A DNA stretch of 64,000 nucleotides from Rebecca billardiae RCC1528. Lineage: Eukaryota > Protista > Haptophyta. A program made the position numbers and the translations under genes. The notes under the pieces were generated by a model. The model was not told the origin of the DNA and searched no databases. It was given only the letters and a program-made list of their open reading frames with translations. Positions 3,814 through 55,228 of this stretch are shown here, in pieces (position 1 is the first letter of the stretch; each line of letters opens with the position of its first letter). The stretch spans positions 2,046,001 to 2,110,000 of the forward strand of contig OZ251222.1 of assembly GCA_965240325.2 (NCBI GenBank), written 5' to 3'.

Positions 3814-5778
3814 TCAGGGCCAGGCCCTCACCCGTCTGGCCATCACCACGGGTCGTACATGCGACGCCGGCGTCGATACGACGCTGGCTGTGACCAGCGG
3901 CGCGGGCAGCTGCGATGGTCGCGGCCGCCACGCTGCCACACTACTGTCCGAGGGTGTGGGTGTGCTCCTGGTGCGCTTCCGCTGTCGTTTGGCAGCGCTC
4001 ACTTCTTTGGTGCTCATCACGTCTTGTTCCTGCCCGCGCTTGTGCGCACCACTCCAAAGGCGCCTCATGCCCGCCAGCTTGTGCACTTCGCATCGGCTGG
4101 CGCGCGCATTGCCCGGCATGCCGAAGTAAGGCCGCGTGGTGCAGCCGGTGTGGTCACACTTGGGGCTCTTCAGGTCGACCATGCCGGCCAGCTTGTGCGC
4201 AGCGCACCGGCTGGCACGCGCGTCGCCCGGCATGCCGAATGAAGGCACCGTGGTGCAGCCGGTGTGATCACACTTGGGGTGCTTCTGGTCGACCATGCCG
4301 GCCAGCTTGTGCACAGCGCACCGGCTGGCGCGCGCGTCGCCCGGCATGCCGAAGTGAGGCCGCGTGGTGCAGCCGGTGTGATCACACTTGGGGTGCTTCA
4401 GGTCGACCATGCCGGCCAGCTTGTGCGCAGCGCACCGGCAGGCGCGCGCGTCGCCCGGCATGCCGAATGAAGGCACCGTGGTGCAGCCGGTGTGATCACA
4501 CTTGGGGTGCTTCAGGTCGACCATGCCGGCCAGCTTGTGCACAGCGCACCGGCTGCCGCGCGCATTGCCCGGCATGCCGAAGTAAGGCCGCGTGGTGCAG
4601 CCGGTGTGATCACACTTGGGGCTCTTCAGGTCGACCATGCCGGCCAGCTTGTGCGCAGCGCACCGGCTGGCGCGTGCGTCGCCCGGCATGCCGAATGAAG
4701 GCACCGTGGTGCAGCCGGTGTGATCACACTTGGGGTGCTTCAGGTCGACCATGCCGGCCAGCTTGTGCGCAGCGCACCGGCAGGCGCTCGCGTCGCCCGG
4801 CATGCCGAATGAAGGCACCGTGGTGCAGCCGGTGTGATCACACTTGGGGTGCTTCTGGTCGACCATGCCGGCCAGCTTGTGCGCAGCGCACCGGCTGGCG
4901 CGTGCGTCACCCGGCATGCCGAAGTGAGGCCGCGTGGTGCAGCCGGTGTGATCACACTTGGGGCTCTTCACGTCGACCATGCCGGCCAGCTTGTGCGTAG
5001 CGCACCGGCTGGCGCGTGCGTCACCCGGCATGCCGAAGTGAGGCCGCGTGGTGCAGCCGGTGTGATCACACTTGGGGCTCTTCACGTCGACCATGCCGGC
5101 CAGCTTGTGCGCAGCGCACCGGCTGGCGCGCGCGTCGCCCGGCATGCTGAATGACGGCTGCGTGGTGCAGCCCTCGTGATCACACTTGGGGCTCTTCACG
5201 TCGACCATGCCGGCCAGCTTGTGCGTAGCGCACCGGCTGGCGCGTGCGTCACCCGGCATGCCGAAGTTAGACCGTTTGGTGCAGCCGGTTTGATAACACT
5301 TGGGGTGCTTCAGGTCGACCATGCCGGCCAGCTTGTGCGCAGCGCACCGGCAGGCGCGCGCGTCGCCCGGCATGCCGAATGAAGGCACCGTGGTGCAGCC
5401 GGTGTGATCACACTTGGGGCTCTTCAGGTCGACCATGCCGGCCAGCTTGTGCACTTCGCACCGGCTGGCGCGCGCGTCGCCCGGCATGCCGAAGTGAGGC
5501 CGCGTGGTGCAGCCGGTGTGATCACACTTGGGGCTCTTCAGGTCGACCATGCCGGCCAGCTTGTGCGCAGCGCACCGGCTGGCGCGCGCGTCGCCCGGCA
5601 TGCCGAATGAAGGCCGCGTGGTGCAGCCCTCGTGATCACACTTGCGGGTCACCACGTCGACCATGCCGGCCAGCTTGTGCGCAGCGCACCGGCTGGCGCG
5701 CGCGTCGCCCGGCATGCCGAAGTAAGGCCGCGTGGTGCAGCCTGTGCGATCACACTTGCGGCTCTTGACGTCGACCAT
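3814..5778 (-). CDS. EsV-1-7 cysteine-rich repeat protein (15 x 38 aa); 5' end uncertain
   Basis: Repeat GMVDLKSPKCDHTGCTTRPxFGMPGDARASRCAAHKLA matches the EsV-1-7 CxxxGC...F...CxxHK pattern; NLS-like AKRQRKR follows. The upstream ORF extension to 6414 runs through transposon-derived DNA. Confidence 0.8.
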   Translation of the reverse strand: MVDVKSRKCDRTGCTTRPYFGMPGDARASRCAAHKLAGMVDVVTRKCDHEGCTTRPSFGMPGDARASRCAAHKLAGMVDLKSPKCDHTGCTTRPHFGMPGDARASRCEVHKLAGMVDLKSPKCDHTGCTTVPSFGMPGDARACRCAAHKLAGMVDLKHPKCYQTGCTKRSNFGMPGDARASRCATHKLAGMVDVKSPKCDHEGCTTQPSFSMPGDARASRCAAHKLAGMVDVKSPKCDHTGCTTRPHFGMPGDARASRCATHKLAGMVDVKSPKCDHTGCTTRPHFGMPGDARASRCAAHKLAGMVDQKHPKCDHTGCTTVPSFGMPGDASACRCAAHKLAGMVDLKHPKCDHTGCTTVPSFGMPGDARASRCAAHKLAGMVDLKSPKCDHTGCTTRPYFGMPGNARGSRCAVHKLAGMVDLKHPKCDHTGCTTVPSFGMPGDARACRCAAHKLAGMVDLKHPKCDHTGCTTRPHFGMPGDARASRCAVHKLAGMVDQKHPKCDHTGCTTVPSFGMPGDARASRCAAHKLAGMVDLKSPKCDHTGCTTRPYFGMPGNARASRCEVHKLAGMRRLWSGAHKRGQEQDVMSTKEVSAAKRQRKRTRSTPTPSDSSVAAWRPRPSQLPAPLVTASVVSTPASHVRPVVMARRVRAWP

Positions 5779-5790
5779 GCCGGCCAGCTT
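4068..5790 (-). repeat. 114-bp coding tandem repeat, 15 near-identical copies
   Basis: Period visible directly in DNA (gtcgaccatgccggccagcttg recurs every 114 bp). Confidence 0.97.
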
Positions 5791-18580: not shown

Positions 18581-18730
<150 letters not shown>

Positions 18731-18895: not shown

Positions 18896-21800
18896 TCACT
18901 GCACGCGCTGGCGCTTGGCCGACGAGAGCTGCGCGGCCATGTCCACGGCCAGTGCCTCCATCAGCTCGAGCGCCTCTGCCGGGTCATTGCGCTTGAACGC
19001 CGACCACTGCTCCTGCTTCACGATCAGGTCGATCTGCTCCTTCGCCAGCTTGCGCACGCCCTCCACCACACGCGCGCACCCGCCCGCCGCCTTGGCGTGC
19101 CGCAGCAGGTCGAGGCAGTTGTCCACGTCCAGCCCGGCGAGCAGCACGTCCTCGCACCGCTTCACGACGCCGAGCAGCACGTCGCCCTCCGCACGAGCGC
19201 GCGTGCCCACCGAGCCTGCACCGGGCGGCGGCTGCAGCTTGCTCGCCAGCCGCAGCAGCTCGAGCACCACCGACGGCTCGGCCGGCAGCTGCGCCACGCC
19301 CGCCGAGTGCAGCTGGCGCAGCAGCGCCTCGTGCGCCGCCGAGCTGAAGTCCGGGTCGGCGTCCACCTCGCGCTGGCTGCCCTCAGACAGACCGCCGCAC
19401 AGCTGGCGCGCGTAGTACTGCGAGTGCTGCGCCAGCAGCAGCCGGCTCGCGCCCAGCTCGGTGCCGTCCGCGCACCGCAGCACCACGTCGTGCTGCCGCA
19501 AGGGCGCGCCCACCGCGTCGCCCAGCGAGCACAGCCGCGCGTGCGCGCCGCGCAGCTCCGCATCGCTGTCGGACAGTCGCGCGTGCGTCTCGCCCGCCGA
19601 CGCAAGCGCACGCTCACGCACCTCCTCGCTGCCGCACAGCAGAATCTTGAGGGCCCACAGCGCAGCCGCGCGAGCGCGAGCGCCGCCGTCGGCATCGCCC
19701 TCCACAGCAGCGCAGCTGTGCACCAGGCCTTGCAGCGCGCTGACCAGCCCAGGCGTGCCGGCAATGGCAGCGCGCTGCGCGGTGCAGTGGGTGACGATGG
19801 TGTGCACGGTGGCCGCCGCATGCGCTGCGATGTGGCGTGATGCGGCCGAGCCGTCACGCACGCGCAGCAGCGGCACGAGGGCGTCGCACCCGCCGTCAGC
19901 AATGAGCGAGGCGCGGCACCGCTTACTCGCTTCCGTGCAGAGGCGGATGACGGCGGCTGCGTTGCCGACCACGTCGACGTTGGCCGAGCGCAGCTGCGAC
20001 GCGAGCGCAGGCATGGCGCCCGCCTCCGCAATCCGTGCGCACAGTATGGGGCCGGAGGCGAGCCAGCTGAGCGCAACTGCCACCTGGAACTGCACGCGCT
20101 CATTGGCCGATCGCAGCAGCGGCACGAGCGCTGGGATGGCGCCAGCCTCGGCGATCGGCGGACGCAGCGTGTCCGTATGGCAGAGCCAGCTGAGCGCAAG
20201 TGCCGCCTCGTGCTGCACGTTCTCGTTGGCCGACCGCAGCAGCGGCACGAGCGCAGGGATGGCACCAGCCTCGGCGATCGGATCGCGCAGCGTGTCCGTA
20301 TGGCAGAGCCAGCTGAGCACAGCTGCCGCCTGGCACTGCAAGTTCTCATTGGCCGACCGCAGCAGCGGCACGAGCGCTGGGATGGCGCCAGCCTCGGCGA
20401 TCGGCGCGCGCAGCGTGTCCGTATGGCAGAGCCAGCTGAGCACAGCTGCCGCCTGGCACTGCAAGTTCTCATTGGCCGACCGCAGCAGCGGCACGAGCGC
20501 AGGGATGGCACCAGCCTCGGCGATCGGATCGCGCAGCGTGTCCGTATGGCAGAGCCAGCTGAGCACAGCTGCCGCCTGGCACTGCAACTTCTCATTGGCC
20601 GACCGCAGCAGCGGCACGAGCGCAGGGATGGCGCCAGCCTCGGCGATCGGCGCGCGCAGCGTGTCCGTATGGCCGAGCGAGGTGAGCATAGCTGCCGCCT
20701 GGAACTGCATGCCCTCATTGACCGACCGCAGCAGCGGCACGAGCGCAGGGATGGCGCCAGCCTCGGCGATCGGCGCGTGCAGCGTGTCCGTACGGCTGAG
20801 CAAGGTGAGCGCAGCTGCCGCCTGGAACTGCACGCGCTCATTGGCCGAGCGCAGCAGCGGCACGAGCGCAGGGATGGCGCCAGCCTCGGCGATCGGATCG
20901 CGCAGCGTGTCCGTATGGCCGAGCAAGGTGAGCGTAACTGCCGCCTCGAACTGCAAGTTCTCATTGGCCGACCGCAGCAGCGGCACGAGCGCAGGGATGG
21001 CACCAGCCTCGGCGATCGGATCGCGCAGCGTGTCCGTATGGCCGAGCAAGGTGAGCGCAGCTGCCGCCTGGAACTGCACGCGCTCATTGGCCGACCGCAG
21101 CAGCGGCACGAGCGCAGGGATGGCGCCAGCCTCGGCGATCGGATCGCGCAGCGTGTCCGTATGGCCGAGCAAGGTGAGCGCAAGTGCCGCCTCGAACTGC
21201 AAGTTCTCATTGGCCGACCGCAGCAGCGGCACGAGCGCAGGGATGGCACCAGCCTCGGCGATCGGATCGCGCAGCGTGTCCGTATGGCCGAGCAAGGTGA
21301 GCGCAGCTGCCGCCTGGCACTGCACGCGCTCATTGGCCGACCGCAGCAGCGGCACGAGCGCAGGGATGGCGCCAGCCTCGGCGATCGGCGCGCGCAGCGT
21401 GTCCGTATGGCCGAGCGAGGTGAGCATAGCTGCCGCCTGGAACTGCATGCCCTCATTGACCGACCGCAGCAGCGGCACGAGCGCAGGGATGGCGCCAGCC
21501 TCGGCGATCGGCGCGTGCAGCGTGTCCGTACGGCTGAGCAAGGTGAGCGCAGCTGCCGCCTGGAACTGCACGCGCTCATTGGCCGAGCGCAGCAGCGGCA
21601 CGAGCGCAGGGATGGCGCCAGCCTCGGCGATCGGATCGCGCAGCGTGTCCGTATGGCCGAGCAAGGTGAGCGTAACTGCCGCCTCGAACTGCAAGTTCTC
21701 ATTGGCCGACCGCAGCAGCGGCACGAGCGCAGGGATGGCACCAGCCTCGGCGATCGGATCGCGCAGCGTGTCCGTATGGCCGAGCAAGGTGAGCGCAGCT

Positions 21801-22774
21801 GCCGCCTGGAACTGCACGCGCTCATTGGCCGACCGCAGCAGCGGCACGAGCGCAGGGATGGCGCCAGCCTCGGCGATCGGATCGCGCAGCGTGTCCGTAT
21901 GGCCGAGCAAGGTGAGCGCAAGTGCCGCCTCGAACTGCAAGTTCTCATTGGCCGACCGCAGCAGCGGCACGAGCGCAGGGATGGCACCAGCCTCGGCGAT
22001 CGGATCGCGCAGCGTGTCCGTATGGCCGAGCAAGGTGAGCGCAGCTGCCGCCTGGCACTGCACGCGCTCATTGGCCGACCGCAGCAGCGGCACGAGCGCA
22101 GGGATGGCGCCAGCCTCGGCGATCGGATCGCGCAGCGTGTCCGTATGGCCGAGCAAGGTGAGCGCAGCTGCCGCCTGGAACTGCACGCGCTCATTGGCCG
22201 ACCGCAGCAGCGGCACGAGCGCAGGGATGGCGCCAGCCTCGGCGATCGGCGCGCGTAGCGTGTCCGTATGGCCGAGCAAGGTGAGCACAGCTGCCGCGGT
22301 GCACTGCACATCCTCATTGGCTGACCGCAGCAGCGGCACGAGCGCAGGGATGGCGCCAGCCTCGGCGATCGGCGCGCGCAGCGTGTCCGTATCGCCGAGC
22401 CAGCTGAGCGCAGCTGCCGCGCCGCACTGCGCATCCTCATTGGCCGAGCTCAGCAGCAGCACAAGCGGTGGAATGGCCCCAGCGTCCGCGAGCGCACTGC
22501 GCACGTCCGGATGCACAGCGATGCCCATCACGGCACGCGCCGCGGCGGCCTGCACGCCGGCAGTACGATCGGGCGCGAGGAGCTGCACAAGCTCCGGCAG
22601 AGCCTGCGAGCCAATGATCACTCCCGCGTCAACATCCTTCTCGCCATACTCGGCGCCAAACGGCTCGAGCGCGACGATCAGAGTCTGTGCGCTCGGCTTC
22701 TCGGAGCGCATGGCCTTGACCAGGTTGGCGATCGCCTCCTGCCCGACCGACGCGCAGGCCCGCTCGATGGCCAT
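18896..22774 (-). CDS. Armadillo-repeat plus C-terminal BTB/POZ protein (ARIA/ABAP1-like architecture) with an expanded, homogenised repeat array
   Basis: 41-aa ARM repeats AGAIPALVPLLRSANE..Q..AA..L; BTB signature HDVVLRCADG...ASRLLLAQHSQYY...LCGGLSEG; NLS-like AKRQR at the C-terminus; intronless. Confidence 0.9.
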   Translation of the reverse strand: MAIERACASVGQEAIANLVKAMRSEKPSAQTLIVALEPFGAEYGEKDVDAGVIIGSQALPELVQLLAPDRTAGVQAAAARAVMGIAVHPDVRSALADAGAIPPLVLLLSSANEDAQCGAAAALSWLGDTDTLRAPIAEAGAIPALVPLLRSANEDVQCTAAAVLTLLGHTDTLRAPIAEAGAIPALVPLLRSANERVQFQAAAALTLLGHTDTLRDPIAEAGAIPALVPLLRSANERVQCQAAAALTLLGHTDTLRDPIAEAGAIPALVPLLRSANENLQFEAALALTLLGHTDTLRDPIAEAGAIPALVPLLRSANERVQFQAAAALTLLGHTDTLRDPIAEAGAIPALVPLLRSANENLQFEAAVTLTLLGHTDTLRDPIAEAGAIPALVPLLRSANERVQFQAAAALTLLSRTDTLHAPIAEAGAIPALVPLLRSVNEGMQFQAAAMLTSLGHTDTLRAPIAEAGAIPALVPLLRSANERVQCQAAAALTLLGHTDTLRDPIAEAGAIPALVPLLRSANENLQFEAALALTLLGHTDTLRDPIAEAGAIPALVPLLRSANERVQFQAAAALTLLGHTDTLRDPIAEAGAIPALVPLLRSANENLQFEAAVTLTLLGHTDTLRDPIAEAGAIPALVPLLRSANERVQFQAAAALTLLSRTDTLHAPIAEAGAIPALVPLLRSVNEGMQFQAAAMLTSLGHTDTLRAPIAEAGAIPALVPLLRSANEKLQCQAAAVLSWLCHTDTLRDPIAEAGAIPALVPLLRSANENLQCQAAAVLSWLCHTDTLRAPIAEAGAIPALVPLLRSANENLQCQAAAVLSWLCHTDTLRDPIAEAGAIPALVPLLRSANENVQHEAALALSWLCHTDTLRPPIAEAGAIPALVPLLRSANERVQFQVAVALSWLASGPILCARIAEAGAMPALASQLRSANVDVVGNAAAVIRLCTEASKRCRASLIADGGCDALVPLLRVRDGSAASRHIAAHAAATVHTIVTHCTAQRAAIAGTPGLVSALQGLVHSCAAVEGDADGGARARAAALWALKILLCGSEEVRERALASAGETHARLSDSDAELRGAHARLCSLGDAVGAPLRQHDVVLRCADGTELGASRLLLAQHSQYYARQLCGGLSEGSQREVDADPDFSSAAHEALLRQLHSAGVAQLPAEPSVVLELLRLASKLQPPPGAGSVGTRARAEGDVLLGVVKRCEDVLLAGLDVDNCLDLLRHAKAAGGCARVVEGVRKLAKEQIDLIVKQEQWSAFKRNDPAEALELMEALAVDMAAQLSSAKRQRVQ
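20060..22450 (-). repeat. 123-bp coding tandem repeat (19 near-identical units) containing a 738-bp higher-order duplication
   Basis: Diagnostic unit VNEGMQFQ occurs at 20701 and 21439 (738 bp apart); units 3-8 repeat as units 9-14. Confidence 0.97.
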
Positions 22775-23083
22775 CGCCTCCCGGGTGCCGCGCAAGCCTC
22801 GTCGTTGGGTCCTGTCCGCTTGCGCTTGGCGAGCGCCGAGCGGGCGGGAGCGGGGGGTGTGCTCGTCGCCGGACTCTCAACTCGTTGCTCGGTACCTCTT
22901 CTTGCACTCCTTATGTAGTCACTTTCCAAGATGAGATTGATGATGGAGATTGACGATTGTCAACCGTCGACTGCTGTGTGTGTCAGAAGGAAGAGCGGGG
23001 GCGCCGCCGCCGTGCCCCCCTGACTGACCGCGCCGTCGCCGAGGCCACCGATCGCGGGTGAGGCGCCGGGGACGCACGTGACG

Positions 23084-24883
23084 ATGGCCACCGGCCCGGC
23101 CCCAAGGAACACCATCAATATCAATGGTAACGACGGAGTGATCGAGCTCGACCAGGACGAGCCACTCCCGCGGCAGCAGCTGAACACGGGCCCCCCGCGC
23201 GAGAATCTCGAATCGCTGCTTGAAGCGCAGAGAGTCGCCCTCATCCGCCGCAAGAAGGAGGCACGGGACTGCCGGGCCGATACGGAAAAGGCCAAAGCGG
23301 AGCTCAAGGCTGCTAAGGACCAGCTGCGCGAGGAGAGGGCGGCTGCTCGGGACCAAGTCGATGCGGCGCAGAAGAAGCAGCGCACCGCGGAGATGCAGCT
23401 CGAGTTGGCAAAGACGGAGCGGAGGAAGAGCCTTCAGCTCGGCGACTCGGGCGGCGTGCGCAAGACCGCCGGCTACCGGCTGCAATATGCCGCGCTCAAG
23501 CAGTACGGCGAGAGCCTGCGGGAGAACCTGCTGCGACGGCACAGCAAATGCAATGCGGTCAAAGGGGTTGAGATTGTGTGGAACGATGTCCCCTCCTGGG
23601 GCATCGGCGTGGAGCGGACGGACGTGCTCGGCTCGATGCTGCACGCGTTCGGTCTCAGCCTGACCAACCCGTCCGCCTTCGCCCGCTGGCCGCAGTTCGT
23701 CTTCGTCCGCGAGGAGGGCGTGGACGCCGGCGCGCTGCGGGTGGAGGCCTACCGGCTGCTGGCGGAGCAGCTGCACCAGCTGGGCGCGCGCAAAGTCGCC
23801 GAGCTCGGGCCGGAGGAGCGGCCGCTGCGGCTGCTCGAGAGGCTCGGCGGGAACGCGGCCGCGATGTACTGGCCCGTCGAGGACGCGTCGTACGACGCCG
23901 GCCCCGCCGACCTGAGCGCCGACCCGCGCCGGATCCTCGGGCGCATCCTCGCGAAGGAGCTGCTCGACCGGATCGACGACGACTCGGCCGCGGCGCTCTC
24001 GCTGCAGCTGCCGACCGCGGTGTTGCTCGGCATCGTCAACAAGCCCTCGAGGACCGGGAACGGCCCGGACTTGCTCAACGCACAGAGCCCGGCCTTCGAG
24101 TGCGTCGACACCGCGCTCGAGCTCGCGGCGGAGGTGGACTCCGTCGCGGCGGAGTGGCGGAAGACGTGGGAGAAGGCGAGGGAGACGCCAATCTCGTTTG
24201 ACTTCGAGATGCGCAACTGGTCGATGAACGTCGCCATGTTCACCGACGTGGAGAAGGACGAGGGCGTTCCTCTCTCGCTGAGCAACGTGGCGGACGCGCT
24301 GCGCCGGGGCTGCGCGCGCTTGTGCCGCTCTGCGCTCGAGCCGAGGAAAGCCGGGTTGGCCATGATGCGCGAGGGCTTTGCGGAGATGACGGGTGATGGG
24401 CTGCGGGCGCAGCTCGCGAGCTGGCACGTGCTGCACCTGCGCGCGCTCTGGCCGCTGAAGCGCACCCCGCGCGGGGAGGAGGTCGCGGCGGTGCTTGAGC
24501 TGAAGGTCCAGGACAACGAGGCGCGCACGATCGCACGCGAGGAGCCGCCGCCCAAGATCACGGACCAGGCGGAGCTCGCGCTGCGCGAGGAGCTCTTCAC
24601 GCATCTGCGCCAGATCGTCAGCGACGAGCTGACGGACAGGCAGCGCAGGATGCTGCTCACCTTTGCCACGGGGCACGAGCTTCTGCCGGAGGCTGGCGAC
24701 CTGATCGAGGTGAACTGGTACACCGTGAACCACAAGGACCTGTGGATGGGCGCGCTCGTGGCGTCGGCGTGCCAGAAGGCCATCACCGTGCCGCGGAAGA
24801 TCAAGACGCGCGACGACCTCAAGAACGCGCTGCTGCTCGTCTGCCACGAGAACTCCGTCGACGACGGCTTCACCACGGTCTGA
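23084..24883 (+). CDS. Coiled-coil plus divergent HECT-type E3 ubiquitin ligase
   Basis: FVREEGVDAGALRVE (HECT N-lobe GEEGxDxGGxxRE), RRMLLTFATG...LP, catalytic-Cys-like ASAC...VP, terminal GFTTV with the -4 Phe. Confidence 0.78.
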   Translation: MATGPAPRNTININGNDGVIELDQDEPLPRQQLNTGPPRENLESLLEAQRVALIRRKKEARDCRADTEKAKAELKAAKDQLREERAAARDQVDAAQKKQRTAEMQLELAKTERRKSLQLGDSGGVRKTAGYRLQYAALKQYGESLRENLLRRHSKCNAVKGVEIVWNDVPSWGIGVERTDVLGSMLHAFGLSLTNPSAFARWPQFVFVREEGVDAGALRVEAYRLLAEQLHQLGARKVAELGPEERPLRLLERLGGNAAAMYWPVEDASYDAGPADLSADPRRILGRILAKELLDRIDDDSAAALSLQLPTAVLLGIVNKPSRTGNGPDLLNAQSPAFECVDTALELAAEVDSVAAEWRKTWEKARETPISFDFEMRNWSMNVAMFTDVEKDEGVPLSLSNVADALRRGCARLCRSALEPRKAGLAMMREGFAEMTGDGLRAQLASWHVLHLRALWPLKRTPRGEEVAAVLELKVQDNEARTIAREEPPPKITDQAELALREELFTHLRQIVSDELTDRQRRMLLTFATGHELLPEAGDLIEVNWYTVNHKDLWMGALVASACQKAITVPRKIKTRDDLKNALLLVCHENSVDDGFTTV

Positions 24884-25985
24884 GGCTGAGCGCAGCTTCG
24901 ACGACCCTTCCCTTGTCAATTGTTCCGGCGGCCACGTAGGCCTTTCCTATTATCAGCCTGACGCCTATGCCCCGACGGTCCAGCCCGGTGGGAGCAGTGA
25001 TTCGTCTTCAATGTGCCGACGCGGTTGGCACTAGGCGGTCGCGGGTGCTGGTCGCTGGATGTCGACGCGCGGACGCAAGGCACGCAACGTCGCAAGCGCG
25101 GATGAGCGGCCAGCGGGAGGAGCAGGTCGTAGCCCGCCGGCGCGCATTATCATATTTTCCGGTTTTTGACCACGACCGGCTTGCGATCCAAGCCCCCCCA
25201 AGGCCTGGCTCAAAGCCAACGGTGACACAGGGGGTATACCCCCCTGTGTCATCCGGGAGCTTTTTGAATACAGTTTGCGCGTGCGCGGGCACTCACGGAC
25301 AGCCGCCGCCAAGAAGGCCAGCCTGCGCGCGCCCTGCTCGTCGTCAGCCGCGGCGCGTGCGCGTCGAGGCGCATGACTGGCTTTGTCGTGCAAGTCGTGC
25401 CCGTGCTCGCGGCTCATGCACGCCTCACGACCGAGATGCATGTCTTGCGCGCCCTACTTTTGCTCGCACTGCGGTCTCCTCGTCGACAGCCTTGTGATCA
25501 CGCGCGCCGCCATTTCAACCGGATGTTGGCCTGCCAGCTGTCGCGCGCGTGTGTGCGGTCTGATCGATGTCGGCATGGCGGCCAGCGAATCAGTGATGTT
25601 AAGTACACCCATACCCATCTCGCAGAAGCGAAAAAGCCGACCTTTGAATGCCCCAGGGGCGCACGCGTGCTCATCACGCTCGTCGGACAGGCCTTCTCCA
25701 GAACTGCGCCTGCCATTCGGCAGGTCTCTGCGCGCGGAGAGGGCGGCGAGGGCGTCGACGAGGCGGCGCGATTGCTGCCTACGGGTCTTCTTACCCCCAC
25801 AAAGCGCCCGCGGACGGCTGTCACGCCCGCATGCGGCCTTGGGAGCGCTGCGCAGGCGGGCCCTCGCGTCGCCCAGTGCTCGGCTGCTCGCCATCCCGTT
25901 TTGGGGGGCTTGGTTCGCAAGCCACCGGACGGTCCTGGGCGCGCAGCCGCGCACGGCCGCGGACCCGCTCCGATCTCGCGACGAC

Positions 25986-34545: not shown

Positions 34546-35454
34546 GGGTAGATCGACCAAACCGAGCTCAGAACCGGAGTGTACCGAGCTAAGCGGATGT
34601 ACCATGGTACACTTTGGTACATAATTGGTACACTATTGGTACACTATTGGTACATGTAAAGATGTACCAAGTGTACCAATAGTGTACCAATAGTGTACCA
34701 ATAGTGTACCAATGGTGTACCAAAGTGTACCAACGCATCCTGACAATGTACCAAATGTCATTGGGTGTACCATGTACACTTTGGTACATAAATGGTACAC
34801 TTTGGTACATTTCATGAGTGTACCAACGTGTACCAACCATGTCGTACCAGTTTGCACACAAAAGTGTACCAAGTGTACCAACTCCTCCCTGAATGTACCA
34901 ACTGCTCCCCAAAGTGTACCAACTTGTCCCAGGGGCAGGGTGTACCAAAAAATGTACCAACTCGTCCGCGCCTGAAAATGTACCAAGTGTACCAAATAAT
35001 TTCCGCGGAATGTACCAACTTGGTGGGATTCTGGGTGTACCAGGTACACCCAGGAAAGTGTACCACTGCTCTGAATCGCCGACGATGGTGTCACACTATT
35101 GGTACATTCATGAAAAGTTGGTACATTGTAATGGTACATTGGGGGACGGTTGGTACACATGGTATGGTACATTTGGTACATCGTTGGGACACATTGGTAC
35201 ATTCTTCGCGGACGAGTTGGTACATTTGGGAGGAGTTGGTACATCAGGTAATGTACCAACATGTGCTATGTGGATGTACCAAAATGTACCATGGTACACC
35301 CAATGGCATTTGGTACATTGTCAGGATGCGTTGGTACACTTTGGTACATAATTAATTGGTACACTATTGGTACACTTGGTACATCTTTTGTACCATGGTA
35401 CATCCGCTTAGCTCGGTACACTCCTCATTTGAGCTCGGTTTGGTGACACCTCCC
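34546..35454. mobile_element. 909-bp non-autonomous Mutator/foldback-type element saturated with TGTACCA/TGGTACA repeats
   Basis: Perfect 10-bp TSD ATTGGACTTC (34536-34545, 35455-35464); GGG...CCC ends; inverted blocks accaaaccgagctca and ggagtgtaccgagctaagcggatgtaccatggtaca at both ends. Confidence 0.9.
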
Positions 35455-38987: not shown

Positions 38988-41261
38988 ATGAACGAGCACC
39001 TGCTCTTTCCAAACCCTGTGTCGCCGGCCACCCGAGACGAGATCATTGAGTGGCACCGCTGGCTCCACGGCGTTCACGACGGCGGCGGCCTCACCGCTTA
39101 CGAGATCATCAACCTGCGCAAAGACCATGCGACGGTGTTCCACGAGAACGTGGAGGAGTTTGTGCGGCAGCAAGTCCACAATCTGCGGCGTAGCTTTCAC
39201 CCCGACAGGCACGGCCAGGCTGGAGCCGATCTGCTCGAGATGTGCAACCAGATCACGAGCCTTGTCAACGAGGCGGCGCAAACTCTCGCCACGCCAGCGA
39301 GCCGGCAAACATACAACGTCGCGGTCGGATTGCAAACTTTCGATGGGAGGGACGCCACGATGGGCGCGCACGGCGGGATCAACCACGCGCTCCTGGAAGG
39401 CGCCTACGGCAGAGTGCGCCGGGCTCTGGACCGCGTGAGCGCCAACCTCGAGCTCGAGCTGCCCAAGATTGTCGTCGTCGGGCTGGAGTCGTCCGGCAAG
39501 AGCTCCACGCTCGAGCGATTGGCGATGCGGCAAGCCTTCCCGCGGGGCGAGCTGTTCACCACGCGCATGCCCATTTGCATGAAGCTGCGCCACCGCACGC
39601 ACGAGAACATTGTCATCCTCAGACACGTCCGGCTGGCCCAGCACGGCATGCCGCGCGAAACCTTGCAGGAGCTGCATGTCGAGCAGCCGTCCGCGTTTGA
39701 ATCCGCAGACCGTGCCGCACAGGCTGTGGTGCAGGATATCGTGCCTGTGGGCGTGATCGCCAGGGCGATTCAGGACTTCGTGCTCCACCAGCACCCCAAC
39801 GACACGGGGCGCAGCATCCTCACCGACGAGGTGATCGAGATCGAGATCCGCGCTCCGAATGTGCCCGAGCTGGAGCTGGTCGACTTGCCCGGCATCGTCG
39901 AGGTGCCGCAGGAGACGCGCCGCGCCTCGCTCGAGTGCACGCGCCGATATTTGCGCGACCCCAGCTGCCTCGTCCTGTGCGTGCTCTCGGCGGGGCCGGA
40001 CACGCTGCGCTCGAACGGCATGCTGCGCATCTTGGAGGAGGAGGCATCGCCGCAGAATCGCCTGTGGGAGCGCACGATTCTGGTGCTGACTAAGGTGGAC
40101 ATGCAGCACGGCGCCGGAGCCACCGCGCACTGGCGAGCCAGGCTCGGCGGTCGTCTGACCCCGGGTGCGGATGAGCTTGAGGACATCCCGGTGCGCCGGA
40201 TCGTGCCGTTGGTGAATCGCGACGCGGGCGCAGGCGCTGAGCTCGCTGATCTCCTGGCCGCGCTCAACGCCGAGAGAGCGTGGATGCAGCAGTGGTGCGC
40301 GGGGCATCCGCATCTCGGCTTCCGTGCGGATGACATGGGCATCAAAGGCCTTCTGCAGCACCTCTCTCACCTCGCGAACCTCCACATCCAGACGAGCTGG
40401 GTGCCTGCGAATCGGCAGCGCTTGCAAGGCATGCGCGAGAACGAGCTTCTCGAGAGGCGCAATCTTGGCGAAGCACCCGGTCGGCTGGAGCTGCTAGCTG
40501 TGCTGCGCGAGGCACAATCGGCGTCGGTGTCGCATCTCGTTATGGGTGACCGCCGGGACCGTCGGGACCGCGGCCACGAGGGCGTCTCGTACATCCGATG
40601 GGACGGCTGCTTTGAATGGTTGCCGAAGCAGCTGGACGCGTGCATGGACCTGGCGACACCGGCTGCGCAGCGAATGGACGAGCTGCTCGGGCAGTCCTCT
40701 CGCGATAACGACTGGGCATGTGTGCTGCTGCTGTCGCACGCGACCTCGAAGCTCCTGCAGGAGCATCTTCGCGCGGGTATCGTGGACACGCTCAAGCGAG
40801 TCGTCGACGAGGCGGCGGTGAACAGTCATGCGCTCCCCATCAAGCTCTCGCGATTTGCACGCCTTCGAGCGGCTTTGGTGCGGCGCGTGGAGACGAGTCA
40901 GGCTCTCGCCGATTCGATCATCCGACTGCGCTCCCTGATCGAGAACCACCCCATGGTGAGCGACTTGGCTGCAGCGAGCCTGGAGTCGGCGGGGGGCCGG
41001 ACGGAGCAGAGGATGAGCATCACGCAGGGCCAGATTCTGAGCCTCATCAGGCGCATGGCTATGCAGCACTGCCTGCTGCCAGTGCTCCAGGATGATCGTG
41101 GCGAGCTCTTCGAGACCGCCACGGTGACGGGAGACGGCGGCGATGTGGTCCTCGAGGAGGATGGAGAGCACGCGCGTCTCCGCGAGGCGCGCACAAACCA
41201 GATCGCGAGCCTCGACGACGCTCTTGCCGTCATCGAGGATCTGGCCGGCGGGCAAGCGTAG
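38988..41261 (+). CDS. J-domain-fused dynamin-family (Mx-like) GTPase
   Basis: RRSFHPDR...VNEAAQTLATPASRQTYN (J domain); LPKIVVVGLESSGKSS (G1), TRMP (G2), DLPG (G3), TKVD (G4); GED-like LEEDGEHARLRE...LDDALAVI; intronless; likely ATG at 38988. Confidence 0.88.
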   Translation: MNEHLLFPNPVSPATRDEIIEWHRWLHGVHDGGGLTAYEIINLRKDHATVFHENVEEFVRQQVHNLRRSFHPDRHGQAGADLLEMCNQITSLVNEAAQTLATPASRQTYNVAVGLQTFDGRDATMGAHGGINHALLEGAYGRVRRALDRVSANLELELPKIVVVGLESSGKSSTLERLAMRQAFPRGELFTTRMPICMKLRHRTHENIVILRHVRLAQHGMPRETLQELHVEQPSAFESADRAAQAVVQDIVPVGVIARAIQDFVLHQHPNDTGRSILTDEVIEIEIRAPNVPELELVDLPGIVEVPQETRRASLECTRRYLRDPSCLVLCVLSAGPDTLRSNGMLRILEEEASPQNRLWERTILVLTKVDMQHGAGATAHWRARLGGRLTPGADELEDIPVRRIVPLVNRDAGAGAELADLLAALNAERAWMQQWCAGHPHLGFRADDMGIKGLLQHLSHLANLHIQTSWVPANRQRLQGMRENELLERRNLGEAPGRLELLAVLREAQSASVSHLVMGDRRDRRDRGHEGVSYIRWDGCFEWLPKQLDACMDLATPAAQRMDELLGQSSRDNDWACVLLLSHATSKLLQEHLRAGIVDTLKRVVDEAAVNSHALPIKLSRFARLRAALVRRVETSQALADSIIRLRSLIENHPMVSDLAAASLESAGGRTEQRMSITQGQILSLIRRMAMQHCLLPVLQDDRGELFETATVTGDGGDVVLEEDGEHARLREARTNQIASLDDALAVIEDLAGGQA

Positions 41262-41960: not shown

Positions 41961-42368
<408 letters not shown>

Positions 42369-55189: not shown

Positions 55190-55228
<39 letters not shown>
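55190..55228. repeat. (AT)n microsatellite
   Basis: Direct observation. Confidence 0.95.

Follow-up and report, generated by a model that had tools for sequence, protein, structure and literature searches.

The window analysed here, 64,000 nucleotides of the haptophyte Rebecca billardiae RCC1528 (assembly GCA_965240325.2, contig OZ251222.1, positions 2,046,001 to 2,110,000 of the forward strand), carries on its minus strand a gene for a protein in which a long array of armadillo (ARM) repeats precedes a BTB-BACK tail. The explanation towards which we lean is that this protein is a Cullin-3 (CUL3) substrate receptor in which diversifying selection acts on the binding face, with a target that is probably foreign and itself changing. 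The BTB-BACK tail would dock on CUL3-RBX1, as its fold and motif suggest, a basic C-terminal motif may carry the protein to the nucleus, and the armadillo solenoid would bind a target for ubiquitination on its concave face, formed by the third helix of each unit. Unequal crossover and gene conversion between 123-bp units would keep the framework uniform and reassort the helix-3 variants, and selection would favour residue changes in the binding face and at the interface positions 27, 34, and 39, which may tune curvature; the signal is statistical and its cause conjectural. By analogy, the likeliest driver would be a changing antagonist protein, either viral or from another parasite. The initial annotation of this DNA had proposed a recombination-programmable receptor of this kind, and its ARM-BTB architecture with CUL3 features, the excess of change in the groove, and the recombination of the array were borne out, whereas the term programmable and the special importance given to the loss of Asn37 were not.

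Architecture of the gene and its predicted CUL3-docking tail

The minus strand from 22774 to 18896 is a single unbroken open reading frame (ORF) of 1292 amino acids with the C-terminal end AKRQRVQ, and the gene appears to lack introns, judging from this continuous frame. Pfam finds 21 Arm matches in the protein and a BTB domain at residues 1095-1181 (E 1.3e-5, over the gathering score). The 21 ARM units are spaced exactly 41 residues (123 bp) apart, the near-identical core consisting of the 19 units 2-20, and Tandem Repeats Finder reports a period of 123, 20.4 copies, 91% matches, and 0 indels at 19980-22491. An eight-unit model (predicted local distance difference test, pLDDT, 95.5) folds every unit into helices H1-H2-H3, with helix 3 at positions 25-38, and, together with the 21 Pfam matches, identifies a solenoid of three-helix repeats of about 42 residues. 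The features of the gene, in window coordinates, are as follows:

18896..22774, minus strand: ARM-BTB-BACK gene, with the ATG at 22774 and the stop codon ending at 18896; single ORF
22496..22774, minus strand: N-terminal cap, residues 1-93, degenerate helical repeats (from the sequence)
22373..22495, minus strand: ARM unit 1, an older flanking unit that differs from the core consensus by 7.5 silent and 15.5 replacement changes
20036..22372, minus strand: core array of 19 x 123 bp (units 2-20), in 12 sequence versions that differ mostly at ARM codons 26-40
21389..22126, minus strand: units 4-9, first copy of the exact 738-bp six-unit duplication
20651..21388, minus strand: units 10-15, second copy, 100% identical to units 4-9
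20159..20650, minus strand: units 16-19, of the Ser36-Trp37-Cys39 type (polymorphism map, four-gamete test)
19913..20035, minus strand: ARM unit 21, diverged
19637..19912, minus strand: two more degenerate ARM-like repeats, solenoid cap (model helices)
19517..19627, minus strand: long helix, residues 1050-1086, linking solenoid and BTB (model)
19232..19492, minus strand: BTB domain, Pfam residues 1095-1181 (Pfam, profile, Foldseek)
19382..19390, minus strand: phi-x-E Cullin-3-binding motif, Leu1129-Ser-Glu, aligned to SPOP M-E-E via the family profile
18950..19132, minus strand: 3-box/BACK helices, about residues 1215-1275 (SPOP BACK profile stretch, E 7e-5; Foldseek)
18905..18916, minus strand: KRQR, monopartite motif resembling a nuclear localisation signal (NLS; from the sequence)

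The 19 near-identical 123-bp units reported initially are confirmed by Tandem Repeats Finder, with a mean pairwise DNA identity of 0.912, but they amount to just 12 distinct DNA sequences, and unit 20 departs from the core sequence beyond position 38. The units adjoin at exactly 123 bp in one frame, and not as single repeats in separate exons. Long overlapping ORFs in other frames and on the plus strand (1092, 1157, and 693 residues) were dismissed as shadows of the GC-rich repeat. GC content along the window is 54-75%, and GC at third codon positions (GC3) in the ARM-BTB gene (0.83-0.90) is similar to that of the neighbouring genes; thus, nothing suggests that the gene came from a virus or by horizontal transfer. 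At the 5' end of the gene, two Logan contigs match window positions 22750-25246 at 100% and 99.96% (0 and 1 mismatch) and both stop 24 bases within the gene, which may weakly hint at a repeated or heterozygous 5' end, as this would produce such contig ends. About 165 bp 3' of the stop codon lies a perfect (AT)72 microsatellite (18585-18729).

The tail resembles that of known CUL3 adaptors. The family profile matches best the BTB-BACK region of SPOP (E 2e-10), followed by KBTBD2, KBTBD4, and KLHL, and a model of residues 914-1292 (pLDDT 91) has SPOP and KBTBD2-CUL3 as its top Foldseek matches (SPOP 4j8z, TMt 0.78, prob 1.0), in agreement with the Pfam assignment of a BTB fold. The BTB domain is followed by 3-box/BACK helices, seen both in the match to the SPOP BACK profile and in the model. 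Moreover, the phi-x-E motif, whose role in Cullin-3 binding is described in the literature (PMC3616122), is found in the alpha3-beta4 loop, where Leu1129-Ser-Glu stands in register with M-E-E of SPOP and the Glu is the family consensus. The tail therefore holds the full set of parts of a CUL3-RING ligase (CRL3) adaptor, CUL3 binding itself being inferred, and the assignment of the protein as a CUL3 substrate adaptor, as initially suggested, is a highly probable prediction. The basic C-terminal motif (KRQR) noted at the outset is also present, and about half of the relatives (10 of 20) have such a motif close to their C-terminal end.

Recombination in the array and variation in helix 3

The array has very probably been shaped by recombination. 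Units 4-9 equal units 10-15 exactly over 738 bp, units 3, 6, and 12 are the same, and the duplications are nested, with single units, an alternating two-unit pattern in units 3-8, and then the six-unit block. When the distinct units are compared, the four-gamete test fails for 90 of 406 site pairs, so that at least nine crossovers or recurrent hits (Rm) are required. Furthermore, units 17 and 19 carry the silent marker at position 11 and the Asn26 that typify units 5 and 7, followed by the Ser36-Trp37-Cys39 block seen in unit 16, and are apparently chimeric. Nested duplications and chimeric units thus point to unequal crossover and gene conversion as the source. Although the exact six-unit duplication and the four-gamete failures support the recombination half of the initial label, programmable is an overstatement: the array can be explained by ordinary unequal crossover and conversion, with no sign of dedicated machinery or of somatic rearrangement.

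The ARM numbering used from the start coincides, residue for residue, with that of designed armadillo proteins, and the faces of the units were assigned by alignment to these proteins together with general knowledge of the numbering. The residue sets initially listed at positions 26, 27, 29, 30, 33, 34, 36, 37, and 39-40 proved correct on rechecking. Positions 26-40 bear most of the changes, as had been claimed for helix 3, but positions 4, 5, and 23 vary too. Codons 26-40 hold 22 amino-acid-changing and 0 silent codon variants, whereas codons 6-25 hold 1 and 6, respectively (Fisher p 1.5e-5 for a 26-40 window picked after the data had been seen); the variable sites are thus clustered rather than scattered. 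The changes follow the 100-degree periodicity of a helix (permutation p 0.009). The clustering of changes in helix 3 is not due to chance. Its centre lies about 35 degrees from the textbook groove, toward positions 27 and 34, which influence the geometry between repeats in designed armadillo proteins (PMC4756613). Published work on ARM repeats assigns positions 30 and 33 and the Asn ladder to binding and positions 27, 32, and 34 to the interface. The proposal that the variable sites line the groove stands for positions 26, 29, 30, 33, 36, 37, and 40, but not for 27, 34, and 39, which are semi-buried between repeats.

For the estimate of selection, the groove was defined as those seven positions, and all counts use distinct alleles, each counted once, because the identity of units 4-9 with 10-15 and of units 3, 6, and 12 would inflate column counts. 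In the groove, 17.5 replacement changes fall on 16.6 sites, compared with 10 silent changes on the 34.2 silent sites of the whole unit, which gives a ratio of replacement to silent change per site (omega) of 3.6-4.5 for kappa values of 1-4 (p <0.001), compared with an omega of 0.09 in helices 1-2. When each codon variant is taken as one event, which allows for multi-base mutations, the anticipated excess of amino-acid change on the concave groove face persists (omega 3.6, p 0.003), in an estimate that is count-based rather than derived from a codon model and that is sensitive to an undercount of silent change per site (dS). A local test inside positions 26-40 gives p 0.03. Exposure alone does not explain the excess, since exposed convex positions have 1 change versus 14 in the groove (p 2e-4) and do carry silent changes; the variability of the two faces in the core array is 0.57 for the groove versus 0.02 for the convex side. 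Silent sites are not frozen, with about 0.3 changes per site in the ARM array versus 0.33 in the EsV-1-7 array that the window also carries and that is unrelated to it. Helix 3 shows no rise in silent changes (1.5 on 10.7 sites), which speaks against both a mutation hotspot at this place and the import of a diverged tract. Moreover, the purifying selection on helices 1-2 implies that the protein is made.

Several observations weigh against this reading. The estimate draws on 12 distinct units and only 8-10 silent changes, and its significance is gone at a silent undercount of at least 1.75-fold; the whole-unit omega (1.15-1.4) is not significant; and recurrent mutation is able to mimic four-gamete failures. 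The groove residues are small or apolar, with few charged or aromatic ones, and the 64-kb window holds no tandem ARM or BTB paralog of the gene. In four of six other arrays there is no significant groove excess. The groove is also the most variable face of ARM proteins in general, at 0.88 versus 0.78 for the convex face in 217 diverged proteins and at 0.62 versus 0.36 in seven internally similar arrays, one of them a designed construct. However, the contrast within this array (0.57 versus 0.02) is far sharper than in the seven similar arrays, and we judge diversifying selection on the groove to be likely.

Alternative explanations and the nature of the target

The principal alternative is that an ordinary adaptor has undergone a recent, near-neutral repeat expansion, in which concerted evolution homogenises the units, folding holds the framework, the tolerant groove drifts, and GC-biased codon use or conversion cuts silent change and inflates omega. 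The generally greater variability of the groove across ARM arrays, the GC3 of 0.83, the fading of the selection signal at a 1.75- to 2-fold dS correction, and the richness in replacements of the other near-identical array of the window, EsV-1-7, are all compatible with it. Nevertheless, exposed convex positions are almost invariant (1 versus 14 events) yet carry silent changes, codons 26-40 have a replacement-to-silent ratio of 22:0, and most silent changes run toward A/T, so that third positions are not frozen; the neutral account thus seems unlikely. If it were true, the gene would be a clean case of concerted evolution in a coding repeat. An assembly error behind the exact 738-bp duplication, with 13 core units in the true array, would agree with the zero differences across the block, but the frame and unit register are kept and shorter exact or near-exact duplications with one- and two-unit periods show the process to be real, which makes such an error highly improbable; the selection counts would in any case be unaffected, since they use distinct alleles only.

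Other alternatives concern what the protein binds and what its tail does. A diversifying receptor could instead follow an endogenous moving target (a transposon or other selfish element, the fast-evolving repeat proteins of the alga itself, or a mating or self/non-self determinant) and remove it via CUL3. The sequence evidence would be the same, the NLS-like motif would fit, genes of the HET-E type act in allorecognition (PMC4986451), and one of the proteins encoded in the window, a variable one built of EsV-1-7 repeats, has a basic motif as well; however, no linkage to a locus of that kind was seen, and we hold this version to be distinctly unlikely. An even smaller chance is given to a sensor or scaffold in which BTB serves oligomerisation, with a role in nuclear regulation or signalling like that of plant ABAP1, which acts via protein interactions in replication and transcription (PMC13075204), possibly together with the adjacent HECT-like ligase. 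Whereas the divergence of the BTB domain (Pfam E 1e-5) and the head-to-head HECT-like neighbour favour it, 3-box/BACK and phi-x-E are both kept, the best structural matches are CUL3 adaptors, and gene calling gave no HECT gene next to either of the two genomic relatives examined.

Within the preferred reading of a CUL3 substrate receptor, the manner of target binding would differ from that of importin-alpha and beta-catenin. The loss of Asn37 holds for all 21 units, but it is not special, as had been supposed, since such loss is common in ARM arrays: Asn occupies position 37 in just 17% of some 4200 ARM units in the proteins compared. In the core, position 37 is L, W, or S and position 33 is A, L, or V; thus, neither the Asn37 ladder nor the Trp33/Glu30 pockets of the importin-alpha/beta-catenin type are formed, and a code of one repeat per dipeptide is unsupported, because the Asn ladder that it requires is missing. 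The absence of Asn37 favours, by inference, a folded or helical ligand, and with a mostly apolar groove the target would probably be such a surface rather than an extended basic peptide. That this target is foreign, a proposal made by analogy, is about an even call.

Relatives, neighbouring genes and comparison with known systems

A full HMMER search with the C-terminal region retrieved a family of ARM-BTB and BTB proteins (30-47% identity) whose named members, from Diacronema lutheri and Pavlovales sp. CCMP2436, come from Pavlovales only, on which basis a pavlovophyte host is most likely. Their arrays also have 41-residue units, but these are older and only 30-50% alike. Several relatives lie on contigs hardly larger than their ORF, and one comes from an MMETSP transcript, which suggests that the family is expressed in related algae. 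Among six other arrays, and without correction for their number, the groove omega is 2.0 (p 0.009) in the CCMP2436 ARM-BTB relative and 1.9 (p 0.03) in a Chrysophaeum taylorii protein with MLKL-N, kinase, and ARM regions.

This protein and two HET-ARM proteins of Pleodorina starrii are among the hits with the most internally similar ARM arrays. MLKL-N is a regulated cell-death domain, and the Chrysophaeum protein, with 11 ARM units that include an exact three-unit duplication at the protein level, looks like a cell-death kinase with an ARM sensor. HET is a further regulated cell-death domain (PMC4986451), and in Pleodorina starrii it occurs in a family of proteins that carry ARM arrays at the C-terminus; in two of these the array is internally similar. 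Other long ARM arrays are joined to a caspase-like domain in Parachlorella, to a helicase in Symbiodinium, and to a RING finger or kinases. These findings are a lead, short of proof, that ARM arrays act as sensors in several algal lineages. It is a more doubtful proposition that they represent a sensor module of general use in algal innate immunity, so far undescribed, in which recombining, groove-selected cassettes would be placed on varied outputs (BTB-BACK/CUL3, MLKL-kinase, or HET) and the present gene would be a member of a strain-variable repertoire sending viral or parasite proteins to the proteasome. In the literature searched, whose coverage is incomplete, no description was found of near-identical or recombining ARM arrays with a selected groove, or of this ARM-BTB family.

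Upstream of the gene, the window continues as follows:

22775..23083: intergenic stretch, 309 bp, head-to-head with the HECT-like gene
23084..24883, plus strand: divergent HECT-like E3 ligase, 599 residues (Atlas features 0.94, 177 shared)

The HECT-like protein has Cys563 at the catalytic position, a Phe four residues from the end, a weak match to E6AP (E 1.8), and a probable N-terminal coiled coil, and it gives no Pfam hit. A sensor-executor pair of this protein and the ARM-BTB protein is unsupported, because the neighbour lacks a Pfam hit and has no counterpart beside the two relatives. Elsewhere in the window, EsV-1-7 cysteine repeats (15 x 114 bp, 4072-5781, minus strand; ORF 3814-5790; Pfam E 1e-197) have 25 replacement and 9 silent codon variants, with a whole-unit omega of 0.86, and are followed by a basic motif, AKRQRKR, like the end of the ARM-BTB protein. 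The gene at 38988-41261 (plus strand) encodes a GTPase of the dynamin family, possibly Mx-like, with a weak match to DnaJ at its N-terminus, a low-GC stretch at 34600-35400 that is rich in short GTAC-containing tandem repeats is likely a small mobile element, and further long AT and TG tracts are found at 41963-42366 and 55190-55227.

To our knowledge, the recognition of viruses and parasites by haptophyte algae is largely unknown, and an adaptor of a ubiquitin ligase with the diversification pattern of immune receptors would be a concrete, testable candidate. Among proteins of similar architecture, the gene for ARMC5 is reportedly conserved, its repeats have diverged, and its substrate is fixed. 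ARMC5 is the animal ARM-BTB CUL3 adaptor for RNA polymerase II (PMC11758996), with the ARM array likewise N-terminal to BTB, and Atlas neighbours of the present protein include ARMC5 clusters; like ARMC5, the present protein would be expected to work as a CRL3 adaptor in the nucleus. The likeness is one of domain order and Atlas clusters, and the present gene differs in its 19 near-identical units and diversifying groove. The plant ARM-BTB proteins ARIA and ABAP1 are also said to have diverged repeats. They share the same domain order (PMC13075204), and the top Atlas clusters are streptophyte Arm+BTB (0.94), but the BTB domain described here belongs to a distinct family, that of the Pavlovales.

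Similar in the way they evolve are the fungal NLRs with repeats of high internal conservation (HET-E/NWD, TPR, and ANK; PMC4986451), which show repeat identity above 85%, concerted evolution, and selected sites on the concave face. The ARM array likewise has more than 85% internal identity over at least 100 residues, with identical or near-identical units over 779. However, the Pfam scan found no NACHT or NB-ARC domain, ARM and BTB-BACK account for the whole length, there is no cell-death effector, the repeats are ARM, and the output would presumably be ubiquitination. The LRR-ROCO and NB-ARC-TPR candidate receptors of Ectocarpus (PMC3341825) are also algal proteins with shuffled repeats and diversifying selection on the binding face, but each repeat is an exon there, in contrast to the continuous frame, ARM repeats, and BTB tail found here.

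The expanded F-box and MATH-BTB adaptors of nematodes and plants reportedly diversify by gene duplication and point mutation. They combine a constant ligase-docking part with a fast-evolving substrate-binding part, and it has already been hypothesised, with some support from C. elegans, that cullin adaptors act as receptors for foreign proteins (PMC4063957). The ARM-BTB gene differs in that it also diversifies by recombination between repeats inside one gene, and it would thereby link repeat-shuffling sensors with expanded cullin adaptors, two strategies known separately. The closest solved sequences are designed armadillo proteins (PDB 5mfm, E 6e-64; PMC4756613, PMC11228518), which share the constant framework and variable helix 3, but the natural 41-residue unit lacks Asn37, Trp33, and mostly Glu30, and their modular dipeptide code need not apply. 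The array may be regarded as a natural counterpart of designed armadillo binder libraries, and its selected positions, including 27, 34, and 39, would show how specificity may vary without the Asn ladder.

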